Positions 4,278-60,569 of a DNA stretch of 64,000 nt are shown piece by piece. Origin of the DNA: Podarcis muralis (lineage: Eukaryota); NCBI RefSeq assembly GCF_964188315.1, contig NC_135670.1, forward strand, positions 6,572,001 to 6,636,000. Direction: 5' to 3'. Both the position numbers and the translations under genes were made by a program. The notes below the pieces were generated by a model that worked only from the letters and a program-made list of their open reading frames with translations, ran no database searches and was not told where the DNA came from. The first letter of the stretch is position 1, and each line of letters begins with the position of its first letter.

Positions 4278-4799
4278 GTAAATATGGAAGGTTTATTAGG
4301 GAAAAGAATGTGGACTGCAAAACGTTCAAGCCTGGGTTTAAGATATGCTGAGCATCCTCAATTCCTGATGAAGCCACTGGGCATTGGGGGCACCCAGCAG
4401 GCCTGAAAATCAGACCCACAACTATCTTTCATGCATCTATTTCTCATCTTAACATAATCCCCCTCTATCCCACTGTTTATGTGCTTTCCTCTCCCCTGGC
4501 TTTTATTTATTATCTGTACAGCTCTTCTGCACTCCTCCAGCAGACTAAAGAGCAAAACAACAACAACTACGGACTTTTCCCCTGGAATTAATGCCCAGTC
4601 AGTTTGGTACATCTGTGAAAATGGCAGAGGTGGGAAAAGTTTTATAAATCCCACAAATAGAACTTATCTCATTCTGGCTCAAGATTTGCAATACAGAGAC
4701 AATTTATGTATATTTCTTCAGATTTGTCCTTTTCAAAAAATAACCAACTTCTTGAGAATTTGTTCAATTATGTATCTCTCCCCCCACCCCTGGATTCCT

Positions 4800-9426: not shown

Positions 9427-10242
9427 ATATCTGTAAGACAGCCTAGATTAGCCAGAATGGGGTTCTTCTCACATTAAGCAATAATTTAATATATTAGATA
9501 GATTTACAGGTGTGCATAGCTCTAGCAAACTATGTCCAAAGTAGTGAAATGCTACAGACTCGCGCTGAGATTCTATACGACTAAATAGCATATGTTTTCT
9601 GGAAAGGTATAATAGGAGTTTAGGTGAGTAATGCTGTGGAAAAGTGTGCTGGGGAGGACTGGTACAATGTTATGCCAATCTAGAAAGACAATATCTACGC
9701 TCCAAAAAGACTAAAATATGGGCCCATATATTGTCTCTACTAATTTCTTAGGCCTAATGTTGCTTTTTATGCCCCTGCTGGCCCAGGCAGCAGCTGGTGA
9801 TTCTACAGCAGCAGTCCAGCTGACCATTCGTGGGTCAAACCCAACTAATTTCAACTCAGAGTATACCCATTTAAAGTTCTGACCATAAAACTGCCATACA
9901 CCGTCATTCTCATGGGCTTGAATAATATTGGAGTCAACTCTAGGGGAGGTGTTCATGTATCATGTGTTTCTGACCATTCTATCAGTCAAAACACTTCTAC
10001 CTGCTCCCTGCAATGATTCCACACTCTCCACCAACCTCCACATGGTATTATGGGGGTTCTCCCGACCCTCCAGAGAAGATATGAAGGACGTGCAGTTATG
10101 AGTGGGCACAGGAGAGGGAGAAAGGCCTGTAGCACTAGTGGGAGTCCCAGTGCTGATTTCTGCTGGAATGCTGGGTTGATTGAATCCAGTCCTATGATCT
10201 TAGAAGAAAACCCAAAAACCAGTGCTATGATGCAGTGTAAAT

Positions 10243-10248
10243 TTTATT
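10243..10248 (-). terminator. G2 polyadenylation signal
   Basis: tttatt on the plus strand, with gctatgatgcag immediately upstream on the plus strand. Confidence 0.75.
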
Positions 10249-10751
10249 AGGAATGAAGAAGACAGCATTTCAGTGAACAACAAGCAGGTTTGAACAGGGC
10301 AAAATGCAAAAAGCTCTTGCGATTGAACAGCTTATTTGTTTCTGAGAGAGGTGATGTATTTAAATAATATTATTGCTCCGCTCCTTTACAGGAGGTCCCC
10401 AGTTACCCAGAAGATCTGGTGCAAATGAGTGTGCTAATTTCATCAACAGAGAGAATAATTCCTGTGCTCTTTACTCTGCTATAGGAACATATGCCTTGAA
10501 GAGCCATAGGCAAATAAATAAATAAACATCAGAGAGGAACATAAATAGTGGGACACAGTGGAGCAAGTTTAGATAGAAAGAGATGCATGAAAGATCTAGC
10601 TGGGCCTGATTCCCAGAGATGCTGAACATTCCCCCAGCTCCTATTGGTACTGACTAGGATTAGGGTGCTCATCATAGCTAAACTCAGGTGTAGCTATTCT
10701 GCTGTTTATCTGGGTCTGTTTTCTTCTCGTTAGTTGATAGTCCATGTGAAC

Positions 10752-11228
10752 TTAGCAGGGGTTGTAACAGATGCTTCCTCTGTCTCCAACGAATCCATAG
10801 TGACTCCCAAGTCCAAAACGAGATCCTCTAAGACCACCAGCTCCAAGAGCACCAGCTCCAAGAGAACCGGCTCCTAGGAACCCACTGCCCAAACCACCAG
10901 GGGAGCATGGAGCATTTCCTCCCACAGCCACGGGCTCACAGCTGGCAGAGAGGATGGGTCCTGGGATGGTCACGATGCAGGCTGGTGGTTGGATCACGAC
11001 CTCTGCTGGTGGGATCTGGTTGATGCATGAAGGGGCGACACCAGAAAGAATACCAAGACTAGCAGAAGGGATGCCGGATCCAACCAGGGCACCGGAGCCA
11101 TAGCCGTAGGTGTCGCCAAGGCCAAGGCCACCAAGGCCTCCAAGGCCTCCAAGACCTGCTGATCCAAAACCGACGACTGGGGTGGAAGCGCAAGATGGGA
11201 CAGCACAGGATGGTCCACAGTTTGCCAT
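10752..11228 (-). CDS. Corneous beta-protein G2, 158 aa
   Basis: 4 aa differences from G1 and 3 from G3. Acceptor AG at 11250-11251 (minus), 21 nt before the ATG. Confidence 0.96.
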   Translation of the reverse strand: MANCGPSCAVPSCASTPVVGFGSAGLGGLGGLGGLGLGDTYGYGSGALVGSGIPSASLGILSGVAPSCINQIPPAEVVIQPPACIVTIPGPILSASCEPVAVGGNAPCSPGGLGSGFLGAGSLGAGALGAGGLRGSRFGLGSHYGFVGDRGSICYNPC

Positions 11229-11800
11229 GGCTGAGTGATGGAGATGAGTCTGAAAGGGCATAAAAGGGAGCAGAAGCAAAATTGTAGACAAGAAGTGCTG
11301 CAATGTTCAGGAATTTGGGGAGATATGTAGCCCCATCACCATCACAATACAGAAAATCTGTTTAAATGTCATCAAAATGTGCATTTATAATCCTAAAAGA
11401 AGAAACACATCAGTACTTTATTAAAAGCAGAGATGACAACCCTTCGATGTAGAGAGGTGAGAGTTCCTATAAGTAATGTATGGAGAAGATGTGGTCCTTC
11501 AGATATTGCTGGCCCATCTCGTCCTTCATCTTGTCATCATGGTGGCCAGCCAGATGACTTTGAGAAACTCTCAAGCAGGACCTGAATGCAACAGCAAAGT
11601 CTCTTCCTGAAGTTTCTTGCCACTCCAGTGTTATTCAGAAGCACCACTGCCTTTGGCACATGGAACATAGCCAAAGAACACAGCCAACATGAGCTGGCTC
11701 ATTGGTTGCATTGCTGAGCTGCTTTACATTCTACCCAAATCTTAGCTCCTGTAATTCGAAGTGGTCAAAGCTACCAAGATGACCTGGACAAGTGAAGCTT

Positions 11801-16913: not shown

Positions 16914-17427
16914 ATACAGTAAATAGGCAGACACTATTGGTCAGGCTGCCTCTCCCCACATCCATCCCTGCCACTCCTCAAATCCTTGCATTCCTTGCAC
17001 TGTCGGGACAGGCATCTGTTTGGCCAGCATGAAAGCAAGAAACTGCACCAAATGGGAATTTGGTTTTATCAATCAGAGCTTATCTTAAATTGTTCCCACA
17101 GATTGTATGGACATCGTTTCCATGACCGTGGACATTGCTTCCATGAGACCTTCAATGGCTACTAGGCATGACACCTTTGCTGTGCCATCCATGGCCAAGA
17201 GCAGTAATGCTTAAGAAGAACGGAGGGAGGTGGGTGCTCTTGTGCTTGTGTTCTACTTACAAGGCTCCCATTGCCACATAAGGAAGACCACAGTGAGAAG
17301 ATAATGCTGGACTAGATGGGCCATTGGGTAACCTAACTTAGGCTTTAATGCATTGCAGCACTCCTTACCTATAATGAACTTTCTGCTCCCTCCTGTGTCC
17401 TTTCAGACTCACCTCCAACACTCAGCC

Positions 17428-17904
17428 ATGGCAAACTGTGGACCATCCTGTGCTGTCCCATCTTGCGCTTCCACCCCAGTCGTCGGTTTTGGATCAGCAG
17501 GTCTTGGAGGCCTTGGAGGCCTTGGTGGCCTTGGCCTTGGCGACACCTACGGCTATGGCTCCGGCGCCCTGGTTGGATCCGGCATCCCTTCTGCTAGTCT
17601 TGGTATTCTTTCTGGTGTCGCCCCTTCATGCATCAACCAGATCCCACCATCAGAGGTCGTGATCCAACCACCAGCCTGCATCGTGACCATCCCAGGACCC
17701 ATCCTCTCTGCCAGCTGTGAGCCCGTGGCTGTGGGAGGAAACGCTCCATGCTCCCCTGGTGGTTTGGGCAGTGGGTTCCTAGGAGCCGGTTCTCTTGGAG
17801 CCGGTGCTCTTGGAGCTGGTGGTCTTAGAGGATCTCGGTTTGGACTTGGGAGTCGCTATGGATTCGTTGGAGACAGAGGAAGCATCTGTTACACCCCCTG
17901 CTAA
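17428..17904 (+). CDS. Corneous beta-protein G3, 158 aa
   Basis: 2 aa differences from G1. Acceptor AG at 17405-17406. Confidence 0.96.
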   Translation: MANCGPSCAVPSCASTPVVGFGSAGLGGLGGLGGLGLGDTYGYGSGALVGSGIPSASLGILSGVAPSCINQIPPSEVVIQPPACIVTIPGPILSASCEPVAVGGNAPCSPGGLGSGFLGAGSLGAGALGAGGLRGSRFGLGSRYGFVGDRGSICYTPC

Positions 17905-18392
17905 GTTCACACGGACTATCAACTTACGAGAAGAAGACAGACCCAGATAAACAGCAGAATAGCTACATCTGAGTTTAGCTATGATGAGCACCCCAATCCC
18001 AGTCAGTCCCAATGGGAGTGAGGTTCAGCACCCCTGGGAATCAGGCCCGGCTAGATCTTTCATGCATCTCTTTCCTATCTCAACTTGCTCCCACTATTTA
18101 TATTCCTCTCCGATGTTTGTTTATTTATTTGCCTAGAGCTCTTCAAGGCATATGTTCCTATAGCAGAGTAAAGAGCACATGAATTATTCTCTCTGTCAAG
18201 GAAATTAGCACCTCAGTTGCACCGGAACTTCCAGGTAACTGAGGACCTTCTGTAAAGGAGAGGAGGAATAATATTATTTAAATACATCACCTCTCTCAGA
18301 AACAAATAAGCTGTTCAATTGCATGAGCTTTTTGCATTTTGCCCTGTTCAAATCTGCTTGTTGTTCACTGAAATGCTGTCTTTTACATTCCT

Positions 18393-18398
18393 AATAAA
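18393..18398 (+). terminator. G3 polyadenylation signal
   Basis: AATAAA followed by ctgcatcatagcactgg. Confidence 0.75.
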
Positions 18399-19156
18399 AT
18401 TTACACTGCATCATAGCACTGGTTTTTGGGTTTTCTTCTAAGATCATAGGACTGGATTCAATCAACCCAGCATTCCAGCAGAAATCAGCACTGGGACTCC
18501 CACTAGTGCTACAGGCCTTTCTCCCTCTCCTGTGCCCACTCATAACTGCACGTCCTTCATATCTTCTGGAGGGTCAGGAGAACCCCCATAATACCATGTG
18601 GAGGTTGGTGGAGAGTGTGGAATCATTGCAGCGAGCAAGTAGACATGTTTTGGCTGATAGAATGGTCAGAAGCACATGATACATGAACACCTCCCCTAGA
18701 GTTGACTCCAATATTATTCAAGCCCATGAGAATGACGGTGTATGGCAGTTTTATGGTCAGAACTTTAAATGGGTATACTCTGAGTTGAAATTAGTTGGGT
18801 TTGACCCACGAATGGTCAGCTGGACTGCTGCTGTAGAATCACCAGCTGCTGCCTGGGCCAGCGGGGGCATAAAAAGCAACATTAGCTGTAAGAAATCAAA
18901 TAGAGTCAATGGTACAATATATGGGCCCATATTTGAGTCTTTTTGGAGCCTAGGAATTGTCTTTCTAGATTGGCATAACATTGTACTAGTCCTCCCCAGC
19001 ACTCTTTTTTATAGCATCAGTCACCTAAGCTCTTATTATACCTTTTCAGAAAACATATGCTATTTAGTCGTATAGAATCTCAGCGCGAGTCTGTAGCATT
19101 TCACTACTTTGGACATAGTTTGCTAGAGCTATGCACACCTGTAAATCTAACTAATA

Positions 19157-23906: not shown

Positions 23907-24401
23907 TTAGCAGGGGGTATAGCAGATGCTGCCTCTACGCCCCACAAACCCATAACGGCCACGGCCCCCCAAACCACCAGAGCTAGACCCCAGAAGACCT
24001 GCACCACCATAGAGCCCTCTGCCAAATCCGCTGCCAAATCCGGATCCATAACCTCCAGCAGCACATGGGGTGTTGCCTCCGACAGACACAGGCTCACAAC
24101 TGGCAGAGAGGATGGGTCCTGGGATGGTCAGGACGACAGAAGGTGGCTGGACCACAACCTCTGCTGGTGGGATCTGGTTGACGCATGAAGGCTGGACTCC
24201 AGAAAGAATACCAAGACTGGCAGAAGGGACGCCGGATCCAACCAGGGCACCGGAGCCATAGCCAGAACCATAGCCGAATCCACCGCCCAATCCACCGCCA
24301 AGGCCAAGGCCACCGCCAAAACCACAGCCGGCTGGTCCAAAACCAACGACTGGGGTGGAAGCACAAGATGGGACGGCGCAGGAAGGTCCACAGTTAGCCA
24401 T
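23907..24401 (-). CDS. Corneous beta-protein G4, 164 aa
   Basis: MANCGPSC...SCVNQIPPAEVVVQPPSVVLTIPGPILSASCEP...RRGSICYTPC. Acceptor AG at 24410-24411 (minus). Confidence 0.96.
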   Translation of the reverse strand: MANCGPSCAVPSCASTPVVGFGPAGCGFGGGLGLGGGLGGGFGYGSGYGSGALVGSGVPSASLGILSGVQPSCVNQIPPAEVVVQPPSVVLTIPGPILSASCEPVSVGGNTPCAAGGYGSGFGSGFGRGLYGGAGLLGSSSGGLGGRGRYGFVGRRGSICYTPC

Positions 24402-35222: not shown

Positions 35223-35729
35223 ATGGCTAACTGTGGACCTTCCTGCGCCGTCCCATCTTGTGCTTCCACCCCAGTCGTTGGTTTTGGACCAGCCGGCTGT
35301 GGTTTTGGCGGTGGCCTTGGCCTTGGCGGTGGATTGGGCGGTGGATTCGGCTATGGTTCTGGCTATGGCTCCGGTGCCCTGGTTGGATCCGGCGTCCCTT
35401 CTGCCAGTCTTGGTATTCTTTCTGGAGTCCAGCCTTCATGCGTCAACCAGATCCCACCAGCAGAGGTCGTCATCCAGCCTCCGGCCGCCATCGTGACCGT
35501 CCCAGGACCCATCCTCTCTGCCAGCTGTGAGCCCGTGGCTGTGGGAGGATATGCTCCATGCTCCCCTGGTGGTTATGGATCCGGATTTGGCAGCGGATTT
35601 GGCGGCGGATTTGGCAGAGGGCTCTATGGTGGTGCAGGTCTTCTGGGGTCTAGCTCTGGTGGTTTGGGGGGCCGTGGCCGTTATGGGTTTGTGGGGCGTA
35701 GAGGCAGCATCTGCTATACCCCCTGCTAA
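35223..35729 (+). CDS. Corneous beta-protein G5, 168 aa
   Basis: N-terminus identical to G4; core IQPPAAIVTVPG...PVAVGGYAPCSP; tail ending RRGSICYTPC. Acceptor AG at 35213-35214. Confidence 0.96.
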   Translation: MANCGPSCAVPSCASTPVVGFGPAGCGFGGGLGLGGGLGGGFGYGSGYGSGALVGSGVPSASLGILSGVQPSCVNQIPPAEVVIQPPAAIVTVPGPILSASCEPVAVGGYAPCSPGGYGSGFGSGFGGGFGRGLYGGAGLLGSSSGGLGGRGRYGFVGRRGSICYTPC

Positions 35730-36234
35730 GCTCTCACGGTCTGTCAAGAAGGAGGAAAGAAAAAGAGATCTGTGGTGGACTATTTCGGTCTGATTATAGA
35801 TATGCTGAGCACCCAAACTCCCTAGGCAGTCCCAATGGCAGCTGGGAGAGTGTTCTGCATCCCTTGTAATCAGGCCCATCTAGAACATGCAGCTGTTTCC
35901 AGTTTAATTTTATCTCACTTTCTCCTGCTTGCTACTATGATATTTATTTGCCTACGTCTCTTTGAAACACACCAGTTCGCATTGGGAAGAAAAGCACAAG
36001 ATCCATTCACTATGTCTATGAAATTAGCATGCAAGTGTAAATATGTGTAATTGGGACTTAATGTAAAGGAAGGTGGAAAGAATGTTCTATAAATGTAGAA
36101 CCCTCTACTCTACCTCCAACCTGAAAAAAATAATTCTAAAGGAGAAGCTGTTCACTGGAATGTGTTCTTTTTTGCTTTATTGTCTTCCAGTATGCTTAGT
36201 AGTCACTTGAATACTTTTACTGTTTGAAATTCCC

Positions 36235-36240
36235 AATAAA
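36235..36240 (+). terminator. G5 polyadenylation signal
   Basis: AATAAA followed by acttttctgcatcatagcactgg. Confidence 0.75.
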
Positions 36241-37650
36241 ACTTTTCTGCATCATAGCACTGGCTTTCTGGTTTTTCTTTTATGTGGCAGCACAATCCTA
36301 TATCCGTCTACCAAGAAATAAGTTCCTTTCAATACAGTCCAATGCAACTTACTCAAAAGTTAGTCGTTTCAGGGTGACAACCTTAAGAACATAACACATA
36401 TCCTCTTGGACTGGTTCAAGCACCCACCATCCTGTTAACAGTGCAGCAAGTATTACCAGAACTTGCCCCCAAATATCATCAGAACCCTTGGATTTTGGAG
36501 GAGGTGTAGGAGATATCACGGGGTTACTTACCAACAGAGAATATTGATAAGGCATAGAACCAAGAAATCCAGAGAGAAGCATCACTGTTATTTTGCTCAG
36601 CAATAGGGGGGAATTTCAAATCTGGGTTTGAGGAACAGTTAATGAACATTCCATTCATTTCTTAGATTCTGTAGAAGAAATTGATTTCCTGACACCAAAT
36701 ATCTATAAAAATTGACCACTGGTTTTTTTTAGTCTCAAAGGATTTAACCAATTGTTCTAGTACCTCTGGTGTCTTAGATGCTAGGAAGGCTGCCAAAGGC
36801 CTGAGAGAAGAGGAATGTTCTTGCCTGGCACTTAAAGATATGTAATGAAGGCATCTATTGAACCTCCTTGGGAGAGCAGTCCAAAAACAGAGAACCACAA
36901 AAGAAAATGAACATTTTCTTGTTGCTGTCCTTCAGACCTCTCATGGAGGAGGTACCTGAAGAAGGGTCTCAGATGGTGATCACAGGGACTGGGTCAGTTC
37001 ATATGGGCAGAGGTGGTCCTTGAGACAAACTTGGTTCTCCAGCTCTTTGGGACTACAATTCCCATCATCCCTGACCACTGGTCCTATTAGCTAGTAGTAG
37101 TAATAATAGTAATTATAATTATAATTATAATTATAATTATAATTATAATTTATTTATACCCCGCCCATCTGGCTGGGTTTCCCCAGCCACTCTGGGCTAC
37201 TTCCAACAGAATATTAAAATACAATAGTCTGTTTAACATTATTTGTAGTCCCAAAACAGCTGGAGGGCCAAGTCTGGCCATCACTGGGTTAGGCTATTGC
37301 TGTTCAGATAGGAGCACAGCTGGCTCACCAGCCAAATCTGATGGAAGGGACTCCATGCCACCGAGGCCAACTGAACCTCAAGTGACAGCAGTGGAACCAG
37401 AAGGACACCCCAAGCTACATGTCTGTTCCTTCAGGGGCTATGTAACCCCATCAAGAGCAGGCCACCTCCCATCTATCCAGTCTATGGAGCACCCACTAAC
37501 TGTACCTCAGTCTTATCTGGACTGAGCTTCAGTTTGTTGGCTCTCATCCAGTCCATTACCAAGGAAGAAAACTGCCCAGCACATCCACGGACAAGCCTTG
37601 AGATATAAAAGAGAAGTAGAGCTGTGTGCCATCAGCATATTGCTGATGAC

Positions 37651-38035
37651 CAGGGCTGTCTTAAGCATATTCGGCGCTGTGATGCAAAGCTCCCTCTGTG
37701 CCCCGCCCCCGTTCCCCGGAGTTGTCAACCTTTTTTCAGGGAGGATGGCACTGCAGGAGGTGGGCAGTGGCTGGAGGGCGGCTCCTCCAGTGGGGAAGAG
37801 CCGGAGGCTGGACTTGGCGCCTTCTGGCTCAGCTGGCCACTTCATGCCACGGTGGGCATGGCAGGCAGAGGCTCTGGATGCAGCGCTGCTTCAGCACAGC
37901 ATGGCGGAGGCGGGAGAGGGCGGAGAGCTGATGCTGGGAGGCACCACATCCAGACTCTGCCTCTTCCCTGGCAACCTCCAGAACATGGCGCCCTGGCACC
38001 CCTCACCACTAGCCTCTATGGGTAAGATGCCACTG
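37651..38035. mobile_element. GC-rich hAT-like MITE (arm partner 43502-43870)
   Basis: TIR cagggctgtctta/taagatgccactg. Confidence 0.6.
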
Positions 38036-39847
38036 CTGTCGATATACGCCAAAACTCCAGATAACCCCACTCAGCAGTTTCATTTGGATGTTAAACAGCA
38101 TGAGGGATAAAATCAAATTCTTCATGGGTCTCATAGAGCCAAAGAGCACTCCCCAAGCATCACCTACTGGAGGTCCAAGTTGGACCGGAACCACTGCAGT
38201 ACAGTGCCACGCACACTTAACTTAGGCTGGATCTAGACACATCAAAGAAGCGTTTCCGTGAAACCTGTTGCAAACTTTGCATGAGAAATTGGGTTGGCAA
38301 AAATAGGACTCCCCAGCGCCATCTGGTGTCACAGTGTTAGAGTGCATAAACAACGCTTATAAAGCGCTTTTTCTTTGCCAGTGTAGCTGAGTCCCTTAGA
38401 CAAGCATTTTTCAGAACAGCAGCTTTCATGACACATGAAGGAAGATAATGACACGATAAAATTCAAAACAGTAACTATTAATGACACAGCTGTATGGAAA
38501 ATGCATCTGGAAGACAAAATGTATTGAGGAGCTAGTGATGTGACACGGAGCCCTTCCTGCCTCTGTTCCTTTCCCCCTCCCTCGCTCTTGTTAAGTATTT
38601 TGATGGTGTGAGAACAGTCTTTAATGTCCTGAGAAAGTTAGAAGGAGGTGAAGCCCTGCCCCCCAGCTGCCTTAATAAGTTGTGGAGGATAACAGCTGGG
38701 CCCCTTCTTTGATGTTGGACATTGTTTTGAGGAAGTTAGGCAATGGGAGGTGGTGGCTATCTATAAAATTGGGTGGTTGGGGCAGAGTTTTTTTTGAAGC
38801 TCGTGCATGGACTGATTGGCTGCAGAGCCGTGCAAACTGAGGCTACCTGGAGGAGTCACTTCACTGCTTCTTGAGGGCTTCCAAGTGGCAGATTGAAGTG
38901 CTTGCTTGCTGTTTTAGGATAAAATCTTTTAATCTTCTCACTCACTTTTGTAGTTTGCATTGCTTCTGAGTCGCATTTTAAAAGAACCACTTTCCCTTTG
39001 GCAAGACAACAGCCTTTCAAAATCCTATTAAAACTATTTAGTTTAATTAATTCAACAACATTTATGAACTTGATCCAGGGATACCAGCTTTTTACAACCT
39101 GGTAATTACATCTCCAATGCCCCTCTGCTACCCGCTTGCCTTTTAGCACCTCCCTGGATTACCCCACTGCCTCCCTTGGGGTGATTCCACTCACTTTGGG
39201 AGTTATTGCTTTAGCATTGCAAGTTAGTAATTCTAACACTTGGAACAAAGAGATGGGATGTTTGTGCTTGGCTTGCTAGGGATGCAACTTTAGAATATAT
39301 GAAAGTGTACTGTAGCCTGTGTGAGAACTGGTCAAGCCTGGAACCACCTACCCAACCTCCATCTTACTTGCCTGAGGCTGCAGTCCTAACCCTGCTTACC
39401 TGGCAGTAAGCCCCATTGAATTCAATAGGACTCAGATTGATTTGGTTAGGGCTTTGCTGTAATTGAGATCAAGGCTGACCCTGATCTTAGACAAAGGATG
39501 TGAAAGCTGAGGTCCTCCAGCTATTGAATAGCTACATATAGTACCCACCAGTCCCAGCAAGTATGACTGTTGGTCTGGGGCTGATGAGAGCTGTGGTCCA
39601 ATGACATCTCGTTGGCTGCAGGTGCCTTAGACAAAAACAGTTACACCCAAAGGAGGCTGTTACAGAGGTATATCTGTACCATTATCCTTCAGGTCAATTT
39701 GGTTTATGGGCCAAAGAGGTGAGGCCTTTTCTATGATTCTCCCAAATGATGGAATACAATTTCCATTGAAATGAGAATTGTCTCAGCAGTGCATATTTTT
39801 TAAAATAAAGCAGGTTTTAATTGGTATTGTTTTGAGTTACCTTTTCA

Positions 39848-40285
39848 TAGAATCATAGAATTGTAGAGTTGGAAGAGACCCCTATGGTCATCTAGTCCAA
39901 CCCCCTAAAGCATCCATGACAGATGGCCAACCAACGTCTGCTTCAAAACCTCCAAGGAAGGAGAGTCCACAACCTCCTGTGTGAGACTGTTTCACAGTCA
40001 AACAGCTCCTACTGTCAGAAAGTACTTCCTGATGTTTAGTTGGAATCTCCTTTATTTTAACTTGAAGCCATTGGTTGAAGTCCTACCCACAAGAGCAAGA
40101 GAAAAACAAGTTTGTTCCCTCTTCCATGTGAAAACCCTTGAGATATTTGAAGAGGGCTGTCATATCTCATTCTCCTCTTTTCCAAGCTAAACATGCCCAG
40201 CTCCGTCAACCATTCTTCATAAAGCTTGCTTTTCAGACTCTTGATCATCTTGGTTGCCCACCTCTGCACACATTCCAGCTTTTTC
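39848..40285 (-). mobile_element. CR1 LINE 3' end
   Basis: atagaatcatagaattgtagagttgg 3' end; KLECVQRWATKMIKSL...GMFSLEKRR motif. Confidence 0.8.
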
Positions 40286-40524
40286 TTGAGGAAAGGGCTG
40301 TAGCTCAGTTGTAGAACATCTGCTTTGTATGCCAAAGCTCCCAGGATCAATCCCTATCATCCCTAGGGAGTGCTAGGAAAAGGACTCCTATCTCAAACCC
40401 TGGGAGATGCTACAGCCAATGTAGACTATACTGAGTTAGGTATACCAGTGGCCTGATTTTGTACAAGGCAGTTTCTTAATTATCTAACTGGGGTTATTTA
40501 AGGCTGGGTTTATTTAAATGGTTA

Positions 40525-40881
40525 AAGGTAAAGGTAAAGGGACCCCTGACCATTAGGTCCAGTCATGACCGACTCTGGGGTTGCGGCACTCATCTCGCTT
40601 TATTGGGCAAGGGAGCCAGCGTACAGCTTCCGGGTCATGTGGCCAGCATGACTAAGCCGCTTCTGGCGAACCAGAGCAGCGCACAGAAACGTCGTTTACC
40701 TTCCCGCCAGAGTGGTACCTATTTATCTACTTGCACTTTGACATGCTTTCGAGCTGCTAGGTGGGCAGGAGCAGGGACTGAGCAACGGGAGCTCACCCCG
40801 TCACGGGGATTTGAACCGCTGACCTTCTGATTGGCAAGTCCTAGGCTCTGTGGTTTAACCCACAGCGCCAGCAGCATCCCC
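40525..40881 (+). mobile_element. Sauria SINE
   Basis: 13-bp TSD atttaaatggtta at 40512-40524 and 40882-40894. Confidence 0.9.
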
Positions 40882-41513
40882 ATTTAAATGGTTAGTTGTT
40901 TTTAAATGCCGAACTTTTATTTGCTGGAATGCATGTCGATTTTTTTGTGTCTCTTATTTGCTTTAAAGAATTCTTGAGCTTTTCTCATATGGTAGCCTGA
41001 TATGTTTGTTTTAAATGGTATTTCCTGCTTATCTCCTCTCGTAGTATTAGAACTTGGGGCCATCCAATGAAGTTGAATGTCAGAAGATCCAGGACAGAAA
41101 AAAAATCAATGACTTCTTCAAATAGGGCATAATTAAACTACAAAATTCTTTCACACAATGGTTAAGATAAGAGATGGCCAGTAAACTGGATGGCTCTAAG
41201 ACAGGATTAGACAAATTCATAGAGGAGAAGGCTATCTGTGACTACCAGCCATTATGTCTATGGCCTCTTTCCACTGTTGGGGGTAGCCTATCTCTGGATA
41301 CCAGTTGCTTGGAATCACAAGTGGGGAATGTTGCTGTTGCACTTATGACATGCTTGTGAGCTTCCCATTGGGTCAACTGTTTGGCCTGTGTGAGAACAGG
41401 GTCATTGACTAGATGAACTAGATCCATCAGACCTGCCCTTATCTCCTTGTAAGAAATGTTCCCCCAAGTACAACTTGCATGGAAGTGTATGCTTGCAGTG
41501 ATAAAAAAATTAA

Positions 41514-42402
41514 TGTCGCAATGAGGCACCAAACGAAGAGAGTTGATTCAGAATGAACTTTAATGACCACTCCCCGCTTAAAACGGGGGGCGCACTTTGC
41601 GTGGACGCGCGCAGCCCCTAGATCTGGAGCGGCTCCAACAGCATAGGCTTGGTTTGCCTTCCCTCAGGTGGGATACCCGGAGGTCTCCGCCTACCTCAGT
41701 CAGTTGTCCAATCCCACCTGGGGGAAGCGTTGCCAAGGAGACCAGGCCAGGTGGGGGAGGGATTACCTTCCCACACAATAGAGGGAGGATCTTACCTGGG
41801 AATCCTCACTTGGCTCCAGAGCTTCTCCCACCCTACCCACCCTCAGTTAATGTCTTATTTGCAGGTTAACTTTTCTTCACAGGTTTTGCAGGTTAACTTT
41901 TCTTCACAAGTATGCGGGCGCTGCTACGTTAAGGTCGCTGTTAAAGGGCCGGAAAGGAATTTCCCTGCATTGGCAGGTTTCGCCTTTCCCGTAGCAAAAC
42001 GTCACAACTTTGGCGGTATCAGGCCTTGGGCGGAATCCTTTAGTCCATCTTCCTCTTTGCGGCAGCGATACCAGGGTTCCCCGTTAAAGGGGTTTCTGAA
42101 GGGAGGCTTTGGCCGTACGCCGAAAGGTCATCATTGCTCTCCCCTGCGGCGGCGGCTATCTCTGCTTGAACATATGTTCTCCAGAACCGGCCCATCCCCC
42201 CCACACACACTGGATAACCCTGATGCTCCCTAGGTCCCCGGCTGGGGACTGGGGAGGGAGAACGCCCAATGCCTGAGCCAAGGTCTACCCACGTTTGAAA
42301 TTTAATAAAGTTGTGGCCAATTTAATCCCATAGCATGTTGTCATGAGTCGTTATTCCACATGACGGGGGGACCGCGCGGGATCTGGGGACTCCACTTGTC
42401 CA
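41514..42402 (+). mobile_element. Putative solo LTR (ends unresolved)
   Basis: CpG-rich island; aataaagttgtggccaa at 42304-42320 is identical to 58821-58837; possible TG...CA ends. Confidence 0.45.
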
Positions 42403-42710
42403 TGCAATGGAAATATGAAAAGCTTCAAGCAAGCAATTGTAAAAGAAGCAGGACAGGAACAAGGCAAAGGCACACAGTATACAATGTGGCTTTGAACTTC
42501 TTCTTGGTCTGGAGGCTTTCGGGACACATAGTGGGAAAGCAGGAGAAAGAAAAGATGGCAGAGACTGCTGTTGGCTTAGATGACGGTCCCAGAAATTCAG
42601 ATTTTCCAGAATCCAAGGTGAGATGCTTAATAATGGATAGGCATGATCTTCACCCATTCAGGGTCATTCAAATCATCACCACACAGATTTTCTTCAGAAG
42701 TTCAATAGGC

Positions 42711-42830
42711 CTAAAAGCACACGCTGCCACGACGCCCCTGCAGAGCCCTCCTTCCAAAGAGCCCACCCCTCCTCAGACCATAGCCCCAAGAGCTTCCAAG
42801 GAGGCCATCCCCATAGCCCCACCCACCATG
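42711..42830 (-). pseudogene. Orphan CBP C-terminal fragment (G7/G8-type tail)
   Basis: Translates HGGWGYGDGLLGSSWGYGLRRGGLFGRRALQGRRGSVCF*, aligning to the G7 tail. The post-stop gcctattgaactt resembles G7/G8 gccaattaaacct. In-frame stop upstream; no start or core. Confidence 0.85.
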
Positions 42831-42961
42831 GTCAGGTTACATTTACCTTTACGTAATTAATAGTTACTGTTTTGAATTTTATCATGTCATTATCTTCCTT
42901 CATGTGTCATGAAAACTGCTGTTGATTCATATGCTGTTGTGGGGGATAGATCATTGTCTTA

Positions 42962-43193
42962 TTATGTATGGCCACCTCATGAGAAGAGAAGACTCCCTGG
43001 AAAAGACCCTAATGTTGGGAAAGATTGAGGGCACACGGAGAAGGGGACGACAGAGGACGAGATGGTGGGACAGTGTTCTCGAAGCTACCAACATGAGTCT
43101 GACCAAGCTGCGGGAGGCAGTGGGAGGCAGGAGTGCCTGGCGTGCTCTGGTCCATGAGGTCACGAAGAGTCGGACACGACTAAACAACAACAA
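42962..43193 (+). mobile_element. RTE-BovB 3' fragment
   Basis: GHLMRREDSLEKTLMLGKIEGTRRRGRQRTRW...TKSRTRLN with a (aac)n tail; absent from the G5 arm. Confidence 0.85.
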
Positions 43194-43904
43194 TGCATTC
43201 TAACACTGTGACACCAGATGGCGCTGTGGAGTCCTGTTTTTGCCAACCCAATTTCTCATGCAAAGTTTGCAACGGGTTTCACGGAAACGCTTCTTTGATG
43301 TGTCTAGATCCAGCCTAAGTTAAGTGTGAGTGGCACTGTTCTGCAGTGGTTCCTGTCCTACTTAGACTTACAGTAGCTGATGCTTGGGGAGTGCTCTTTG
43401 GCTCTGTGAGGTCCATGAAGGGTTTGATTTTATCCCTCATGCTGTTTAATATCCACATGAAACTGCTGAGTGGGGTTATCTGAAGTTTTGGACATCGTCA
43501 GCAGGGGCGTCTTACCCTTAGAGGCTAGTAGTGCAGGACGCCAGGGTGCCAAGTTCTGGAGGGCACCAGGGAAGAGGCGGTGGCTGGACACAGTGCCTCC
43601 CCACATCAGTTCGCCGCCCTCGCCCAAAACAGTGCCGTGCTCGGAGCCTCCGCCTGGCGTGGCCACCTTGGCACGAAGCAGCCAGCTGAGCGGGGAGGCA
43701 CTGCGTCCAGCCTCCGCCTCTTCCCTGCCGGAGGAGCAGCCCTCCAGCCACTGCCCACCTCCTCCAGCCCCGCCAGCAGCGCTGTCCTCCCCCCCAAAAA
43801 GGTCGACAATGGGGGTGGGTGCCAGGGGGAGCCTTGCACCACGGCACCGAATATGCTTAAGACAGCTCTACTTCTCTTTTATATCTCAAGGCTTGTCCGT
43901 GGAT

Positions 43905-44680
43905 GTGCTGGGCAGTTTTCTTCCTTGGTAATGGACTGGATGAGAGCCAACAAACTGAAGCTCAGTCCAGATAAGACTGAGGTACAGTTAGTGGGTGCTC
44001 CATAGACTGGATAGATAGGAGGTGGCCTGCTCTTGATGGGGTTACATAGCCCCTGAAGGAACAGACATGTAGCTTGGGGTGTCCTTCTGGTTCCACTGCT
44101 GTCACTTGAGGTTCAGTTGGCCATGGTGGCATGGAGTCCCTTCCATCAGATTTGGCTGGTGAGCCTGCTGTGCTCCTATCTGAACAGCGATAGCCTAACC
44201 CAGTGATGGCCAAACTTGGCCCTCCAGCTGTTTTGGGACTACAACTCCTATGATCCCTAGCTAACAGGACCAGTGGTGAGGGATGATGGGAATGGTAGTC
44301 CCAAACCTTGAGGGCCAAGTTTGGCCATCATTGGCCTAACCTCTGTTGCCTCTACCACTAGGTTAGATCACTGCAATGCATTGTATGTGAAGCTGCCTCT
44401 GAAAACAGTTCAGAAACATTGGCTGGTGCAGAATTTGGTGGCTGGGTTGCTCACTGGGGCAGGACAGTTTGAGCATATAACACCAATCCTGGCCTGACTC
44501 CACTGGCTGCTAATTAGTTTCCTGACCCAATAAAGCCTTAAATGGCTCAGGACTGCAATATCTCAAGGACCAGCGCTGCCCATATGAACTGACCCAGTCC
44601 ATGTGATCACCATCTGAGACCCTTCTTCAGGTCCCTCCTCCATGAGAGGTCTGAAGGACAGCAACAAGAAAATGGTCATT
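43905..44680 (+). mobile_element. L2 LINE 3' fragment with a nested hAT MITE (44201-44333)
   Basis: MDWMRANKLKLSPDKTEV motif; the MITE has 8-bp TSD gcctaacc. Confidence 0.75.
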
Positions 44681-45358
44681 TTCTTTTCTGGTTCTCTGTT
44701 TTTGGACTGCTCTCCCCAAGGAGGTTCAATAGATGCTTTCATTACATATCTTTAAGTGCCAGGCAAGAACATTCCTCTTCTCTCAGGCCTTTGGCAGCCT
44801 TCCTAGCATCTAAGACACCAGAGGTACTAGAACAATTGGTTAAATCCTTTGAGACTAAAAAAAACCAGTGGTCAATTTTTATAGATATTTGGTGTCAGGA
44901 AATCAATTCGATATACAGAATCTAAGAAATGAATGGAATGTTCATTAACTGTTCCTCAAATCCAGATTTGAATTTTCCCGCTATTGCTGAGCAGACCATC
45001 TTAAAACAACAGTGATGCTTCTCTCTGGATTTCTTGGTTCTATGCCTTATCAATATTCTCTGTTGGTAAGTAACCCCGTGATATCTCCTACACCTCCTCC
45101 AAAATCCAAGGGTTCTGATGATATCTAGGTGGCAAGTTCTGGAAATACTTGCTGCACTGTTAACAGGATGGTGGGTGCTTGAACCAGTCCAAGAGGATAT
45201 GTGTTATGTTCTTAAGGTTGTCACCCTGAAACGACTTACTTTTGAGTAAGTTCCATTGAACTGTATTGAAAGGAACTTATTTCTTGATACACATGTATGG
45301 CATTGTGCTGCCACATAAAAGGAAAACCAGAAAGCCAGTGCTATGATGCAGAAAAAGT

Positions 45359-45364
45359 TTTATT
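45359..45364 (-). terminator. G6 polyadenylation signal
   Basis: Same context as in G4 and G5. Confidence 0.75.
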
Positions 45365-45869
45365 GGGAATTTCAAACAGTAAAAGTATTCAAGTGAATAC
45401 TAAGCATACTGGAAGACAATAAAGCAAAAAAGAACACATTCCAGTGAACAGCTTCTCCTTTAGAATTATTTTTTTCAGGTTGGAGGTAGAGTAGAGGGTC
45501 CTACATTTATAGAACATTCTTTCCACCTTCCTTTACATTAAGTCCCAATTACACATATTTACACTTGCATGCTAATTTCATAGACATAGTGAATGGATCT
45601 TGTGCTTTTCTTCCCAATGCGAACTGGTGTGTTTCAAAGAGACGTAGGCAAATAAATATCATAGTAACAAGCAGGGGAAAGTAAGATAAAATTAAACTGG
45701 AAACAGCTACATGTTCTAGATGGGCCTGATTACAAGGGATGCAGAACACTCTCCCAGCTGCCATTGGGACTGCCTAGGGAGTTTGGGTGCTCAGCATACC
45801 TAAAATCAGACCAAAATAGTCCACCACAGATCTCTTTTTCTTTCCTCCTTCTTGACAGACCGTGAGAGC

Positions 45870-46337
45870 TTAGCAGGGGGTATAGCAGATGCTGCCTCTA
45901 CGCCCCACATACCCATAACGGCCACGGCCCCCCCAAGCACCAGAGCTAGACCCCAGAAGACCTGCACCACCATAGAGCCCTCTGCCAAATCCGCTGCCAA
46001 ATCCAGATCCATAACCACCAGCAGCACATGGGGTGTTGCCTCCGACAGACACAGGCTCACAACTGGCAGAGAGGATGGGTCCTGGGATGGTCAGGACGAT
46101 AGGAGGTGGCTGGACCACAACCTCTGCTGGTGGGATCTGGTTGACGCATGATGGGGCAACTCCTGCCAGGACTCCAAGGTTGCTTGCTCTTTCAGCACCT
46201 CCATAACCATAGCCGAGACCTCCGTAGCCGTAGCCGAGACCTCCATATCCATTGCCAAGACCTCCTGCTGATCCAAACCCAACAGTGGGAGTGGAAGCAC
46301 AGGATGGGACAGCGCAGGATGGACCACAGTCAGCCAT
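45870..46337 (-). CDS. Corneous beta-protein G6, 155 aa, chimeric
   Basis: N-terminus MADCG...GGAERASNLGVL is like G7/G8; tail GGYGSGF...RRGSICYTPC is like G4/G5. Acceptor AG at 46356-46357 (minus). Confidence 0.95.
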   Translation of the reverse strand: MADCGPSCAVPSCASTPTVGFGSAGGLGNGYGGLGYGYGGLGYGYGGAERASNLGVLAGVAPSCVNQIPPAEVVVQPPPIVLTIPGPILSASCEPVSVGGNTPCAAGGYGSGFGSGFGRGLYGGAGLLGSSSGAWGGRGRYGYVGRRGSICYTPC

Positions 46338-47184
46338 TGTTGTGTAGAGGTGAGTCTGAAACCAAGAAGACCATGGGACAAAATGAACATGTGGAATGCT
46401 ACTTCAATAGGGAACAGAGGGGACATTTAAATCAGCTGCCTTTGACAGTTCTAACGCTATGCCCTAATGCTTGGGTTCTTTATTGTCTTCTCTTTCTTTC
46501 ACCACAGCCCTTCTCTTCATTGTGGGTCCCAAATCCAAATACTGGTAGATCCAGGAATGTCTGAGAACGTCCTCTATCTGAAACTCTGGAGAATAGTTTC
46601 CAGTCAGTGAGGACAATACTGAACTAGGAGGTCCAATGGTCTGTCTTGGTAAAAAGCAACTCTCTAAGTTTCTATTTAAACCAGACCTTTAGCTGGAACA
46701 ACGAATGCAGGAATTTTTTTTCTTTCCTAGAGGAAGGGCCATTACTCACTGGCAGAACATATGCTTTGTATTCGATCCCTGGAATCTGCAGGTTGGGCTG
46801 GGAAAGAATCTCTCATCTGAAACCCTGGAGAGCCTCAGTCGGTCAGAAGAGACAATACTGAACTAGATGGATCAATTTTAAGGCAGCTTCCAATATTATT
46901 ACTTTCTTCATCTGCCAAATCTTCCATGAAGAACAAATGTATATTAGCCTATGCAATTAATACTCCCTTATGCTGTTTTTTTTTAATCTTCCTGATTGAA
47001 TTTTTGCTAAGGTTACATTGCTGGGGAAATCTGAAAAACATTCCGTGGAATGCTGTCTTGTGTCTCAAGCCCAATGCATGGAGAGTCATTAAGGCTAAAT
47101 TTGTACTTTACAATGAGGAAAGCTGGATTTGCAAAACTTGTGATAGAATAAGACTCTCTCACCAGGAAAACAAAAATGTCTAGT

Positions 47185-53933: not shown

Positions 53934-54443
53934 ATGGCTCACTGTGGCCCATCCTGTGCCGTCCCATCCTGTGCTTCCACCCCCACCGTTGGGTTTGGAT
54001 CTGCAGCTCTTGGTAGACGTGGAGGTCTTGGCTACGGATGGGGAGGTCTTGGCTACGGCAATGGAGGTCTCGGCTACGGCTATGGAGGTCTCGGCTACGG
54101 CTATGGAGGTGCCGAAAGAGCAGCCAATCTCGGTGTCCTGGACGGAGTCATCCCTTCATGCGTCAACCAGATCCCACCAGCAGAGGTCGTGATCCAGCCA
54201 CCTCCCAGTGTCCTGACCATCCCAGGGCCCATCCTCTCTGCCAGCTGTGAGCCTCTGTCTGTTGGAGGCAACACTCCATGTGCTGTTAGTGGTTCTGGAA
54301 TCGTAGGGGGTTATGGCTATGGTGGGTGGGGCTATGGGTCTGGCCTCCTTGGAAGCTCTGGGGGCTGGGGCTATGGTTTGGGCTATGGAAGGGGAGCACT
54401 CCTTGGAAGGAAGTTCGGGCGTCGTGGTAGCATCTGTTCTTAG
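53934..54443 (+). CDS. Corneous beta-protein G7, 169 aa
   Basis: MAHCGPSC, GGLGYGx repeats, core SCVNQIPPAEVVIQPPPSVLTIPGPILSASCEP, tail ending GRRGSICS. Acceptor (t)n-AG at 53918-53919. Confidence 0.96.
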   Translation: MAHCGPSCAVPSCASTPTVGFGSAALGRRGGLGYGWGGLGYGNGGLGYGYGGLGYGYGGAERAANLGVLDGVIPSCVNQIPPAEVVIQPPPSVLTIPGPILSASCEPLSVGGNTPCAVSGSGIVGGYGYGGWGYGSGLLGSSGGWGYGLGYGRGALLGRKFGRRGSICS

Positions 54444-60065: not shown

Positions 60066-60569
60066 TTATGCACAGATGTTACCACGACGCCCGAACTTCC
60101 TTCCAAGGAGTGCTCCCCTCCCGTAACCCAAACCATAGCCGAAGCCCCCAGAGCTTCCAAGGAGACCAGACCCATAGCCCAAGCCCCCAAAGCCTCCTAC
60201 GATCCCGGAACCACCAACAGCACATGGAGTGTTGCCTCCAACAGCCACAGGCTCACAGCTGGCAGAGAGGATGGGCCCTGGGATGGTCACAACGCAGGCA
60301 GGTGGCTGGACCACAACTTCTGCTGGTGGGATTTGGTTGATGCAGGATGGGACAACTCCTGCCAGGACTCCGAGGTTGGCTGCTCTTTCAGCACCTCCAT
60401 ATCCATAGCCGAGACCACCAAATCCGTAGCCGAATCCTCCATTTCCATAGCCAAGACCTCCCAATCCATAGCCGAGACCACCATAGCCAAGACCTCCTGC
60501 TGATCCAAACCCAACAGTGGGGGTGGAAGCACAGGATGGGACAGCACAGGATGGACCACAGTCAACCAT
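60066..60569 (-). CDS. Corneous beta-protein G8, 167 aa
   Basis: MVDCGPSC...GGAERAANLGVLAGVVPSCINQIPPAEVVVQPPACVVTIPGP...GRRGNICA. Acceptor AG at 60588-60589 (minus). Confidence 0.96.
   Translation of the reverse strand: MVDCGPSCAVPSCASTPTVGFGSAGGLGYGGLGYGLGGLGYGNGGFGYGFGGLGYGYGGAERAANLGVLAGVVPSCINQIPPAEVVVQPPACVVTIPGPILSASCEPVAVGGNTPCAVGGSGIVGGFGGLGYGSGLLGSSGGFGYGLGYGRGALLGRKFGRRGNICA

Follow-up and report, generated by a model that had tools for sequence, protein, structure and literature searches.

A Chimeric Corneous Beta-Protein Gene in Podarcis muralis with a Paralogous Tail Apparently Copied into Its Coding Exon

Introduction

Chimeric genes are usually inferred from the product alone, long after they were formed. 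In coupled homologous and non-homologous DSB repair in mammals, one end invades a homologous template and the other end is joined without homology. In human structural variation, FoSTeS/MMBIR junctions carry 2-8 nt of microhomology. Chimeric genes formed by partial gene duplication were reviewed by Katju 2012 (PMC3449122), and a Drosophila example arose by illegitimate recombination (PMC1463047). The CBP genes of the EDC are arranged as a tandem cluster and consist of a non-coding 5' exon and then one coding exon, and ectopic conversion and concerted evolution have been suggested for the EDC genes of P. muralis (PMC11431283). This report describes a locus in such a cluster where the donor, the product, the in-frame discarded tail, both junctions, resolved to the base, and the unbroken gene in three relatives are all still readable, so the event can be dated and the repair pathway can be argued from evidence. 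The event is a clean natural case of an already known kind.

The Gene Cluster and the Chimeric Gene G6

The window, that is, the whole stretch of 64,000 nucleotides that was analysed (P. muralis, NC_135670.1, positions 6,572,001 to 6,636,000), is a cluster of corneous beta-protein genes of a lacertid. One of them, G6 (45870-46337, minus strand), is an intact open reading frame of 155 codons plus stop in one coding exon; a TTTCAG acceptor-like site lies about 18 nt upstream of its ATG, and RNA coverage ends before 46400. G6 scores 38.6 bits over residues 63-114 with Pfam PF02422 (cut-off 25), the profile of the beta-sheet core box, and for comparison G5 scores 29.8 bits and the P. lilfordi protein P0095 41.2 bits. 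This domain is carried by all of the 90 squamate matches, and the exact G6 protein is absent from the protein collection searched.

Compared with the present-day genes of the window, 46013-46376 of G6 resembles G8 (82%) and G7 (79.5%), and from 46013 on into the 3' flank G6 turns G5/G4-like; the switch from G7/G8-like to G5 sequence that the initial annotation had seen at 46013-46020 is thus present in self-BLAST and in the alignment of coding sequences. Two parental genes stand behind the reading frame: the N-terminus is orthologous to P0095, P0096 and P0094, and the tail to the G5 genes of the same species. The recipient-derived part, consisting of the coding-exon start, the ATG and the N-terminal coding sequence (46092-46376, minus strand), is in its original place and collinear with the three orthologues, and ancestral-G6-specific bases (the PPPIVLT codons) are common to G6 and P. 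lilfordi down to 46092. The donor-derived coding tail (…SCEPVSVGGNTPCAAGGYGSGFGSGFGRGLYGG…ICYTPC, 45870-46062, minus strand) is G5-type at five of the five informative sites in 46021-46062 and is of the same type as the G5 orthologues of P. lilfordi, Lacerta agilis and Zootoca vivipara. It is followed by a new, donor-type 3' UTR (45342-45869, minus strand) with AATAAA at 45359-45364 and a poly(A) site at about 45342. G6 is a chimera which combines its own promoter, N-terminus and core with a G5-type glycine-rich ICYTPC tail, 3' UTR and poly(A) signal.

The Orthologous Site in Related Lacertids

The window was compared with the corresponding loci of P. lilfordi (L003), L. agilis (L004) and Z. 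vivipara (L005). In all three species the collinear site holds one intact, unfused gene (P0095, P0096 and P0094, respectively), in which a G6-type N-terminus is joined directly to a tail of the orphan type, and in these orthologous genes no more than about 20 nt separate window positions 46009 and 42829. The three loci are collinear with the window on both sides and are without the insertion. The N-terminal G6 part aligns to L003 9151-10344, L004 9146-10329 and L005 9660-10346, the collinearity spanning 46009-47182, and relative to the orthologues the window holds about 3.2 kb extra, from 42830 to about 46062-46091. An unfused G6 contiguous with an orphan-like tail in related lacertids had been named in the initial annotation as the observation to look for, and it was found in P. 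lilfordi, L. agilis and Zootoca. The unfused gene in the three relatives bears out that an inverted G5-type tail and flank entered the ancestral G6 coding exon, that G6 received a new C-terminus and 3' UTR while its old tail was orphaned, and that donor, product and discarded remnant lie within one window. L. agilis P0002, which was also considered as the G6 orthologue, proved to be the next gene past the window's right end, the true orthologue being P0096.

The same comparison bears on a different history, in which G5 was duplicated whole, in inverted orientation, onto an older gene and the 5' half of this copy afterwards became G7/G8-like by conversion. Conversion is rife in the cluster, as seen in a G4 tract from G6 and a G5 core from the G1-3 type, and to that extent such a history would be in keeping with the locus. 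It is contradicted, however, by the collinear orthologous 5' coding sequence of G6 and more than 1 kb of upstream flank in three species (92.6% identity to L. agilis and 90.1%, with gaps, to P. lilfordi), and no G5-type 5' flank lies upstream of G6; a converted whole duplicate is highly improbable.

The Donor Gene and the Inserted Arm

The donor interval in G5 runs from the core box through the tail and 3' UTR and then through 2.75 kb of flank (35496-38485, plus strand; G5 coding sequence, 35223-35729). In self-BLAST, inverted homology between the G6 arm and G5 covers 44561-46345 against 37025-35215, 43193-44244 against 38347-37243 and 42853-42923 against 38485-38415. The arm is G5-derived, as had been stated, but it ends at 42853 and not at 42855. 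Beyond the poly(A) site, the rest of the arm is inverted G5 3' flank (42853-45341, minus strand), within which lie a piece of BovB (42969-43193) and, at 44335-44560, sequence since lost from the window's own G5 flank. The arm is homologous to the P. lilfordi G5 flank at L003 13868-15320 and 15463-17590. The position of the donor is unchanged, and the spacer 38415-41565 is collinear with, and in the same orientation as, P. lilfordi L003 10794-13938. Because the donor is intact in place and the spacer is not inverted, the copying was conservative. In addition, no marks of a retrocopy or of TE transduction were seen, that is, no A-run at 42853 and no target-site duplication, and the arm extends 2.5 kb past the poly(A) site (45342 to 42853), unlike a retrocopy ending at the mRNA poly(A).

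When inverted repeats recombine by crossing over, the stretch between them is inverted and the tails are exchanged reciprocally. The core boxes of G5 and G6, which are inverted relative to each other, are long and similar enough for such recombination, but G5 still has its own tail and flank, no part shows an inversion against P. lilfordi and there has been a duplication. Neither an inverted interval nor a reciprocal exchange of flanks was found at the locus, and NAHR between the two boxes is next to impossible.

Junction 1

The position of junction 1 was obtained from an informative-site map made with three orthologues of ancestral G6 and four of G5/G4 type. At 46062, 46053, 46044, 46032 and 46021, where all three ancestral-G6 orthologues differ, G6 carries the G5-type base, and it has ancestral-G6-type bases from 46092 upward only; therefore, the crossover lies inside 46063-46091 (minus strand), 29 nt of the core box (TIPGPILSAS) that are identical in donor- and recipient-type genes and sit inside about 130 nt of core-box homology. 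Since the crossover is in this identical stretch, the in-frame join was guided by homology.

The initial annotation had let the insert enter through the microhomology of the 8-mer TGGTGGTT, common to G5 and the G8-type context. The 8-mer does occur at the homologous place in G5 (35567-35574, plus strand), G6 (46013-46020, minus strand) and G8 (60209-60216, minus strand), and the similarity to present-day window genes switches at it, as would be expected from end joining or a template switch at 8 nt that was in frame by luck. However, it is not the junction: according to the G5/G4 orthologues of three other species, five G5-type sites lie 5' of the 8-mer (46021-46062), and the crossover is in the core box. 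Ancestrally G5 read PCAAGG, as lilG5, agiG5 and zooG5 do, the window's G5 having been altered there later by gaining a G1-3-like core, and the apparent junction at the 8-mer is due to this later conversion. Joining at the 8-mer would need an extra, later G4/G5-to-G6 conversion of exactly 46021-46062, and the L. agilis event described below likewise crosses over in the core box; such joining is distinctly improbable. Comparison with paralogues only had misplaced junction 1 by about 45-70 nt relative to the orthologue-based position, and the locus gives the caution that present-day paralogues alone can misplace a fusion junction. Furthermore, 45994-46119 is nearly identical in G4 and G6, so a later conversion among G4, G5 and G6 could have shifted the visible boundary, and the original junction 1 could have been further 3' than it now looks.

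Junction 2 and the Orphaned Tail

At junction 2 there is a filler of 23 nt, GTAAAGGTAAATGTAACCTGACC (42830-42852, minus strand), which matches neither donor nor recipient in alignments to their proxies and which is unique in the window with up to 3 mismatches allowed. No template of at least 13 nt was found for it in any locus fetched; because the only matches were 10-12-mers, in SINE heads and a tandem repeat, the template search was uninformative. Junction 2 is non-homologous, with this filler between the two ends. The insertion was not the clean paste that had been supposed, as the old exon is short of about 47-75 nt and the 23 nt of filler were gained.

The orphaned ancestral G6 tail (42711-42829, minus strand; ...GGWGYGDGLLGSSWGYGLRRGGLFGRRALQGRRGSVCF) still has 39 codons in frame and a stop at 42711-42713, both frame and stop being intact on the same strand as G6, and it is 89.7% identical to residues 122-160 of the P. 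lilfordi protein. The old 3' UTR and flank of ancestral G6 (42406-42710, minus strand) are homologous to the P. lilfordi, L. agilis and Zootoca genes, and 42829-42406 matches L003 10365-10797 (94.5%), L004 10350-10782 (91%) and L005 10373-10793 (87.5%). A tail with stop and 3' UTR near the end of the arm had been recognized correctly in the initial annotation, but its type is that of its own ancestral-G6 orthologue group and not strictly G7/G8. No homology to G7/G8 3' flanks was found in 38486-42685, and the orphan UTR matches the ancestral-G6 orthologues instead. RNA coverage of the orphan tail is nil beyond a 31-nt match to a paralogue.

Read and Transcript Support

In a repeated gene cluster the structure might also be an assembly artefact, and the arms are 92-98% alike, N gaps lie at about 47.0-47.4 kb and junction 1 is spanned unique-to-unique by none of the listed contigs, that is, no DNA or RNA contig listed runs from G6-specific 5' sequence through the core box, which G6 shares with G4, into arm-specific sequence. 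Against this, junction 2 is reproduced exactly, with 0 differences, in short-read contigs covering 42750-42882 (X3 and X14, from separate studies and years), and a contig from organism B also crosses 42830. In the contigs 44805-46093 and 45021-46093, flank specific to the arm runs on into the tail and core box. Moreover, a mis-join of G5 reads could not have made the arm, because the arm preserves segments of the ancestral G5 flank that are lost from the window's G5. An artefact is therefore very doubtful indeed.

The G6-specific 5' coding part is transcribed. RNA contigs lie over 46100-46399, with a depth like that of the tail, and end at the exon edge, and the exact words of 46021-46376 are present in RNA runs from two studies at 0.56-0.73. 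RNA contigs X15 and X17 have T-run loose ends at 45342, the poly(A) site, in a UTR shared with G4/G5; the G6 3' UTR differs from the G4/G5 UTRs by only 1.5-1.7%, and because of this identity of about 98% the contigs with poly(A) ends are not G6-specific. For the same reason, the RNA contigs 45342-46004 (X15, X17 and X18) were dropped both as proof of a chimeric mRNA and as proof of the insertion in organism C.

Age of the Insertion and Later Gene Conversion

The initial annotation spoke of a birth caught in place. As a fresh event this did not hold up, for the divergence between arm and G5 about equals that between the window and P. lilfordi, and the insertion is not recent but dates from shortly after the separation from the P. 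lilfordi lineage. Raw distances among the arm, the window's G5 and lilfordi G5 are almost equal (0.076, 0.062 and 0.072), so it is by 11 versus 6 sites that the insertion is placed after the species split: the arm shares 45 derived sites with both Podarcis G5 flanks and groups with the window's G5 at 11 sites, as against 6 and 1 for the other groupings, and each has 22-23 changes of its own. An arm about 10% distant from G5, and older than the species split, had been suggested by gapped BLAST identities, which misled; substitution-only distances and polarised sites overturned this, and they also rejected the G4 PCAAGG as derived from G6.

Ordinary gene-conversion tracts also occur in the cluster, in G4 (from G6) and in the G5 core (from the G1-3 type). 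In the window's G5, 35525-35574 was later overwritten by G1-3-like sequence. The G4 tract (24031-24156, minus strand), a secondary product recognized in alignments of coding sequences, is nearly identical to G6 46119-45994 and includes ancestral-G6-type codons (VVVQPPSVVLT) and the same 12-nt deletion as G6; lilG5, agiG5, zooG5 and zooG4 are without these states.

Proposed Mechanism and Its Recurrence

The best explanation, and a probable one, is one-ended homologous copying from the paralogue G5, finished by end joining. The course of events, from the break through strand invasion to the final join, is read from the scar and would be as follows. Ancestral G6 would have been broken just 3' of the conserved beta-sheet core box, and the broken end with the core box would have lost some 50-75 nt and paired with its almost identical counterpart in G5, which lies on the opposite strand at a distance of about 7-10 kb. 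Synthesis would then have been primed through the G5 tail, the 3' UTR and 2.6 kb of downstream flank, about 3.2 kb in all, and the new strand would have been released and joined to the other broken end without homology, gaining the 23-nt filler. The original tail and UTR would have been left dead 3.2 kb downstream and the donor untouched. As the first join relied on homology within the core box, the G6 reading frame would have been kept automatically.

In L. agilis G7, the crossover again lies in the core box, and beyond it 0.76 kb of agiG5 tail and flank (distance 0.032) has been copied in direct orientation; at junction 2 there is a microhomology of 3 nt (GTT), and the orphaned tail of G7 is still intact. 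This event is independent of, and of the same design as, that in the window's G6. There are then two independent tail swaps in the four lacertid loci examined, both of which put a G5-type ICY(T/S)PC tail on neighbouring genes. A third chimera suspected in Zootoca turned out to be a complete G4-like gene moved next to G7 by rearrangement.

The copying might also have been started by FoSTeS/MMBIR-type fork switching, a collapsed fork in G6 having re-primed on the opposite-strand paralogue and switched back. An inverted template close by, a copied tract of 3 kb and filler where the switch back took place are in keeping with such events, and inverted duplications induced by DSBs and by forks are documented experimentally (PMC10622511, PMC13275508). 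However, the first switch used long homology and not microhomology: as against the 2-10 nt of microhomology by which FoSTeS/MMBIR is recognized, junction 1 is a 29-nt block and junction 2 a filler with no microhomology. In addition, the L. agilis event was a direct copy, so inversion is no required feature. Fork switching is unlikely but a serious candidate; it is a variant of one-ended copying, and a collapsed fork would leave the same sequence scar as a two-ended break.

More tentatively, and with somewhat less than even credence, the CBP core box may be a recombination handle through which glycine-rich tails and 3' UTRs are repeatedly swapped between paralogues by one-ended copying. If so, either the sequence just 3' of the core box would be a fragile site or the ICY(T/S)PC tail would be favoured by selection, and tail shuffling would be a regular diversification route of this skin-protein family, with orphan tails as datable fossils. 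The repeat in L. agilis hints at such a regular exchange of tails among beta-keratin-type skin proteins.

Comparison with Known Systems

As in chimeras formed by partial duplication (PMC3449122, PMC1463047), a copied piece of one gene was joined at this locus to a piece of a second, a new reading frame, C-terminus and 3' UTR resulted and the parent was kept. Unlike in those chimeras, the G6 insert lies in the middle of the coding exon of a paralogue and a homologous join in a shared domain guaranteed the frame; furthermore, the displaced tail survives beside G6 and the unbroken state survives in three relatives. In this way the locus illustrates that a structural domain common to two genes can secure the reading frame of their fusion. 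The G6 insert is, like those of FoSTeS/MMBIR, a nearby templated inverted insertion with filler at one junction, but at junction 1 there are 29 perfectly matching nucleotides inside about 130 nt of homologous sequence. As in the ectopic conversion of CBP/EDC genes, paralogues exchanged sequence via their conserved parts (PMC11431283). Ordinary conversion, however, is like-for-like with two homologous ends, whereas the G6 tract ran 3 kb past the homology, added sequence and left a tail behind. G6 resembles coupled DSB repair in that one junction is homologous and the other, which has filler, is not, in that a long tract was copied past the homology and in that the donor is unchanged. Coupled DSB repair is an experimental outcome in cultured cells, whereas in the lacertids it is read from a germline event that is fixed and several million years old, and this in two instances.

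The gene cluster and the chimeric gene G6

The window contains eight single-exon corneous beta-protein genes (sauropsid beta-keratins, Pfam PF02422) of alternating orientation, that is, G1 (3801-4277, +), G2 (10752-11228, -), G3 (17428-17904, +), G4 (23907-24401, -), G5 (35223-35729, +), G6 (45870-46337, -), G7 (53934-54443, +) and G8 (60066-60569, -); G7 differs from a Podarcis muralis protein at 2 of 169 residues. The G1-G3 regions (3637-4554, 9492-11305 and 17351-19156) are near-identical copies in alternating orientation, G1 matching G3 at 97% over 528 nt and G2 matching G3 at 93.8% over 1.8 kb. Judging from the sequence, inverted duplications seem to have built the whole cluster.

The 5' part of G6 (46013-46376) shows 82% similarity to G8 and 79.5% to G7. 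Self-comparison of the window revealed that its 3' part and 3 kb beyond consist of G5 tail and flank copied in inverted orientation (the "arm"), with three inverted matched segments: 44561-46345 to 37025-35215, 43193-44244 to 38347-37243 and 42853-42923 to 38485-38415. Downstream of the arm, on the same strand as G6, lies an "orphan" tail (42711-42829, -) of 39 codons, whose frame and stop are intact and which ends with ...GGWGYGDGLLGSSWGYGLRRGGLFGRRALQGRRGSVCF and the stop. The 8-mer TGGTGGTT was found where the initial annotation had placed it, and all the features described there, namely, the G7/G8-like 5' part, the inverted arm, the 8-mer and the downstream tail, were seen in the sequence.

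The unfused gene in relatives

A protein search with G6 gave a Zootoca vivipara protein that matches G6 in the N-terminus and the orphan in the tail; its 90% cluster also includes proteins from P. lilfordi (P0095) and Lacerta agilis (P0096). The orthologous loci of P. lilfordi (L003), L. agilis (L004) and Z. vivipara (L005) were compared; each is collinear with the window on either side, in the order G7, G6, G5, and has a single intact gene where G6 lies. In P. lilfordi, L003 9151-10344 corresponds to window 47180-46009 and the directly adjoining 10365-10797 to 42829-42406, beyond which the spacer (41565-38415) and G5 are arranged and oriented as in the window; the other two loci have the same pattern. 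Therefore, about 3.2 kb within the coding exon of the window is absent from the relatives, and the orphan is the original G6 tail with its original 3' UTR. The finding that the initial annotation had named as confirmation, an unfused G6 contiguous with an orphan-like tail, is thus present in all three species, and the one it had named as refutation, a separate complete gene at the orphan position, was not seen in L003, L004 or L005.

Other differences were observed among these loci. P. lilfordi lacks about 840 nt (window 41566-42405) that separate the old G6 3' flank from the spacer. In Z. vivipara (OY735919.1; L005, L006 and L007), there are two copies of the G6-G7 pair, whose G7 proteins are identical and which include a further intact ORF of G6 type at about L007 3024-3446. 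A complete G4-like gene adjoins the G7 3' region 76 nt past the G7 stop, and the G5-G6-G7 block has the opposite orientation to that in Podarcis and Lacerta.

The two junctions

Junction 1, the join from recipient to G5 sequence, was mapped on a 14-gene nucleotide alignment. G6 and the P. lilfordi gene have common ancestral-G6-specific bases down to 46092, and all informative sites of G6 from there on (46062, 46053, 46044, 46032 and 46021) carry the G5-type base, the three ancestral-G6 orthologues all having another base there, which places the crossover within 46063-46091. This 29-nt stretch, which encodes TIPGPILSAS, does not differ between the two parents and lies inside about 130 nt of strong similarity in the core box, the conserved beta-sheet segment. 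Later conversion could have moved the visible boundary, because G4 and G6 are almost identical over 45994-46119. The junction formerly placed at TGGTGGTT is an illusion, since G5-type bases are already present at 46062-46021. The core box of the window G5 (35525-35574) reads VAVGGYAPCSPGG and is G1-G3-like, and G5 of the three relatives reads V(A/S)VGGNTPCAAGG without this change; the window G5 was overwritten later by G1-3-like sequence through conversion, which produced the false junction. Moreover, G5 of the three relatives and the Zootoca G4-like gene all read ...VSVGGNTPCAAGGYGSGFG..., so PCAAGG is ancestral G5 sequence and no fusion scar. The window-type G5 core is also carried by the G5-like P. 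muralis model P0081 (UniProt A0A670JZ74). In this model the reading frame is lost immediately after ...GGYAPCS and the tail is read in its +1 frame, owing to either a 1-nt indel in the P. muralis assembly or a mis-model.

At junction 2, between the arm and the orphan, donor homology stops at ...TTAATTAC (42853) and recipient homology restarts at ATGGTGGGTGGGG (42829, nucleotide 365 of the P. lilfordi CDS). The 23 nt between them, GTAAAGGTAAATGTAACCTGACC, are unique in the window, and a search for their template found no convincing one; the old exon has lost about 47-75 nt.

Sequencing support and expression

The junction 2 region (42750-42882) is matched with 0 differences by contigs from runs of different studies (X3 and X14), and a contig from a second organism (X10) also spans 42830. 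Contigs 44805-46093 and 45021-46093 link the arm-specific flank to the tail and core box; they end at 46093, where G4 and G6 diverge, so that no listed contig crosses junction 1 from unique to unique sequence. A 12-nt unit at 45981-45983, corresponding to one GSGF repeat of the tail, occurs in G6-like contigs of two individuals (X3 and X14) and is absent from the window, and is a length polymorphism of the new G6 tail among individuals.

In the RNA run X15, depth is very high over 45350-46399 and zero beyond 46400, and T-runs in RNA contigs mark a poly(A) site at 45342, 17 nt below an AATAAA. RNA contigs over the G6 3' UTR are not G6-specific, because it differs from the G4 and G5 UTRs by only 1.5-1.7%. 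The G6-specific evidence is the coverage of 46100-46399, and RNA runs from two studies contain 0.56-0.73 of the exact 31-mers of 46021-46376. Therefore, G6 is transcribed in its G6-specific 5' part, a single chimeric mRNA being a candidate; RNA coverage of the orphan tail was looked for and none was found. The 3' UTRs of G4, G5 and G6 (G6: 45342-45869) are 1.3-1.7% apart within the genome and 2.7-2.9% from P. lilfordi, and 4-10% apart further out in the flank; this similarity results from either homogenising conversion or a constraint on the UTR sequence.

Donor and age of the arm

The ancestry of the arm was analyzed over 1975 columns of the flank alignment, L. agilis and Zootoca serving as outgroups. 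Derived sites common to the arm, the window G5 and the P. lilfordi G5 number 45, while 11 sites unite the arm with the window G5, 6 the arm with the P. lilfordi G5 and 1 the two G5s, leaving aside 13 clustered in a small palindromic element. The substitution-only distances are 0.076 (arm-window G5), 0.062 (arm-P. lilfordi G5) and 0.072 (between the G5s), and in orthologous unique sequence the window is 0.054-0.057 from P. lilfordi and 0.071 from L. agilis. These values suggest that the copy was taken from the Podarcis G5 lineage soon after the P. lilfordi lineage split, probably at roughly two-thirds or more of the depth of that split. The insertion is thus an old, settled event and not a birth "caught in place" as initially described, the arm and the window G5 having 22 and 23 private changes, respectively.

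The arm keeps a BovB LINE fragment (42969-43193) and a 226-nt segment (44335-44560), both present in the P. lilfordi G5 flank and absent from the window's own. They are pieces of the ancestral G5 flank since lost by the window G5, so the arm is a better fossil of the old flank than its donor.

A second chimera and probable spread to G4

In L. agilis, the position of G7 is occupied by a gene (L004 2733-3215; CM020432.1) that joins an N-terminus of G7 type to a tail of G5 type ending ICYSPC. Behind it come about 0.76 kb of flank from the L. agilis G5 (distance 0.032), sharing bases specific to L. agilis, and then the orphan G7 tail, still intact (L004 1839-1985), with the G7 flank. Its junction 1 lies in the core box (alignment columns 311-323), like that of G6, and its junction 2 is a 3-nt GTT microhomology; this copy, however, is direct, whereas that in G6 is inverted. 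The window, P. lilfordi and Zootoca all have an unbroken G7, and the L. agilis chimera is independent of the G6 event.

In addition, G4 24031-24156 is almost identical to G6 46119-45994. Because this tract has ancestral-G6-type codons (VVVQPPSVVLT) and the same 12-nt deletion as G6, it resembles the product of a gene conversion with the chimeric G6, located 22 kb away in the same orientation, as the donor.

Mechanism and comparison with known events

One junction is homologous and the other is non-homologous with filler, the copied tract extends 3 kb beyond the homology, the donor is unchanged and the spacer is not inverted. Together, these features point to homologous copying from G5 by one end, which would have been completed by end joining, possibly as synthesis-dependent repair of a break or the corresponding process at a collapsed replication fork. 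A crossover between inverted repeats is excluded because neither inversion nor reciprocal exchange is seen, a retrocopy because the arm continues 2.5 kb beyond the poly(A) site, and a duplicate of the whole gene whose 5' part was converted later because the G6 5' part and its flank are orthologous to those of the relatives. It is conceivable, if somewhat doubtful, that tails are regularly swapped within the corneous beta-protein family by way of the core box. The G6 chimera is not described in a paper on the P. muralis epidermal differentiation complex (PMC11431283). Chimeric genes via partial duplication and one-ended repair are both already known (PMC3449122, PMC1463047), and G6 is an unusually complete case of this known type of event.
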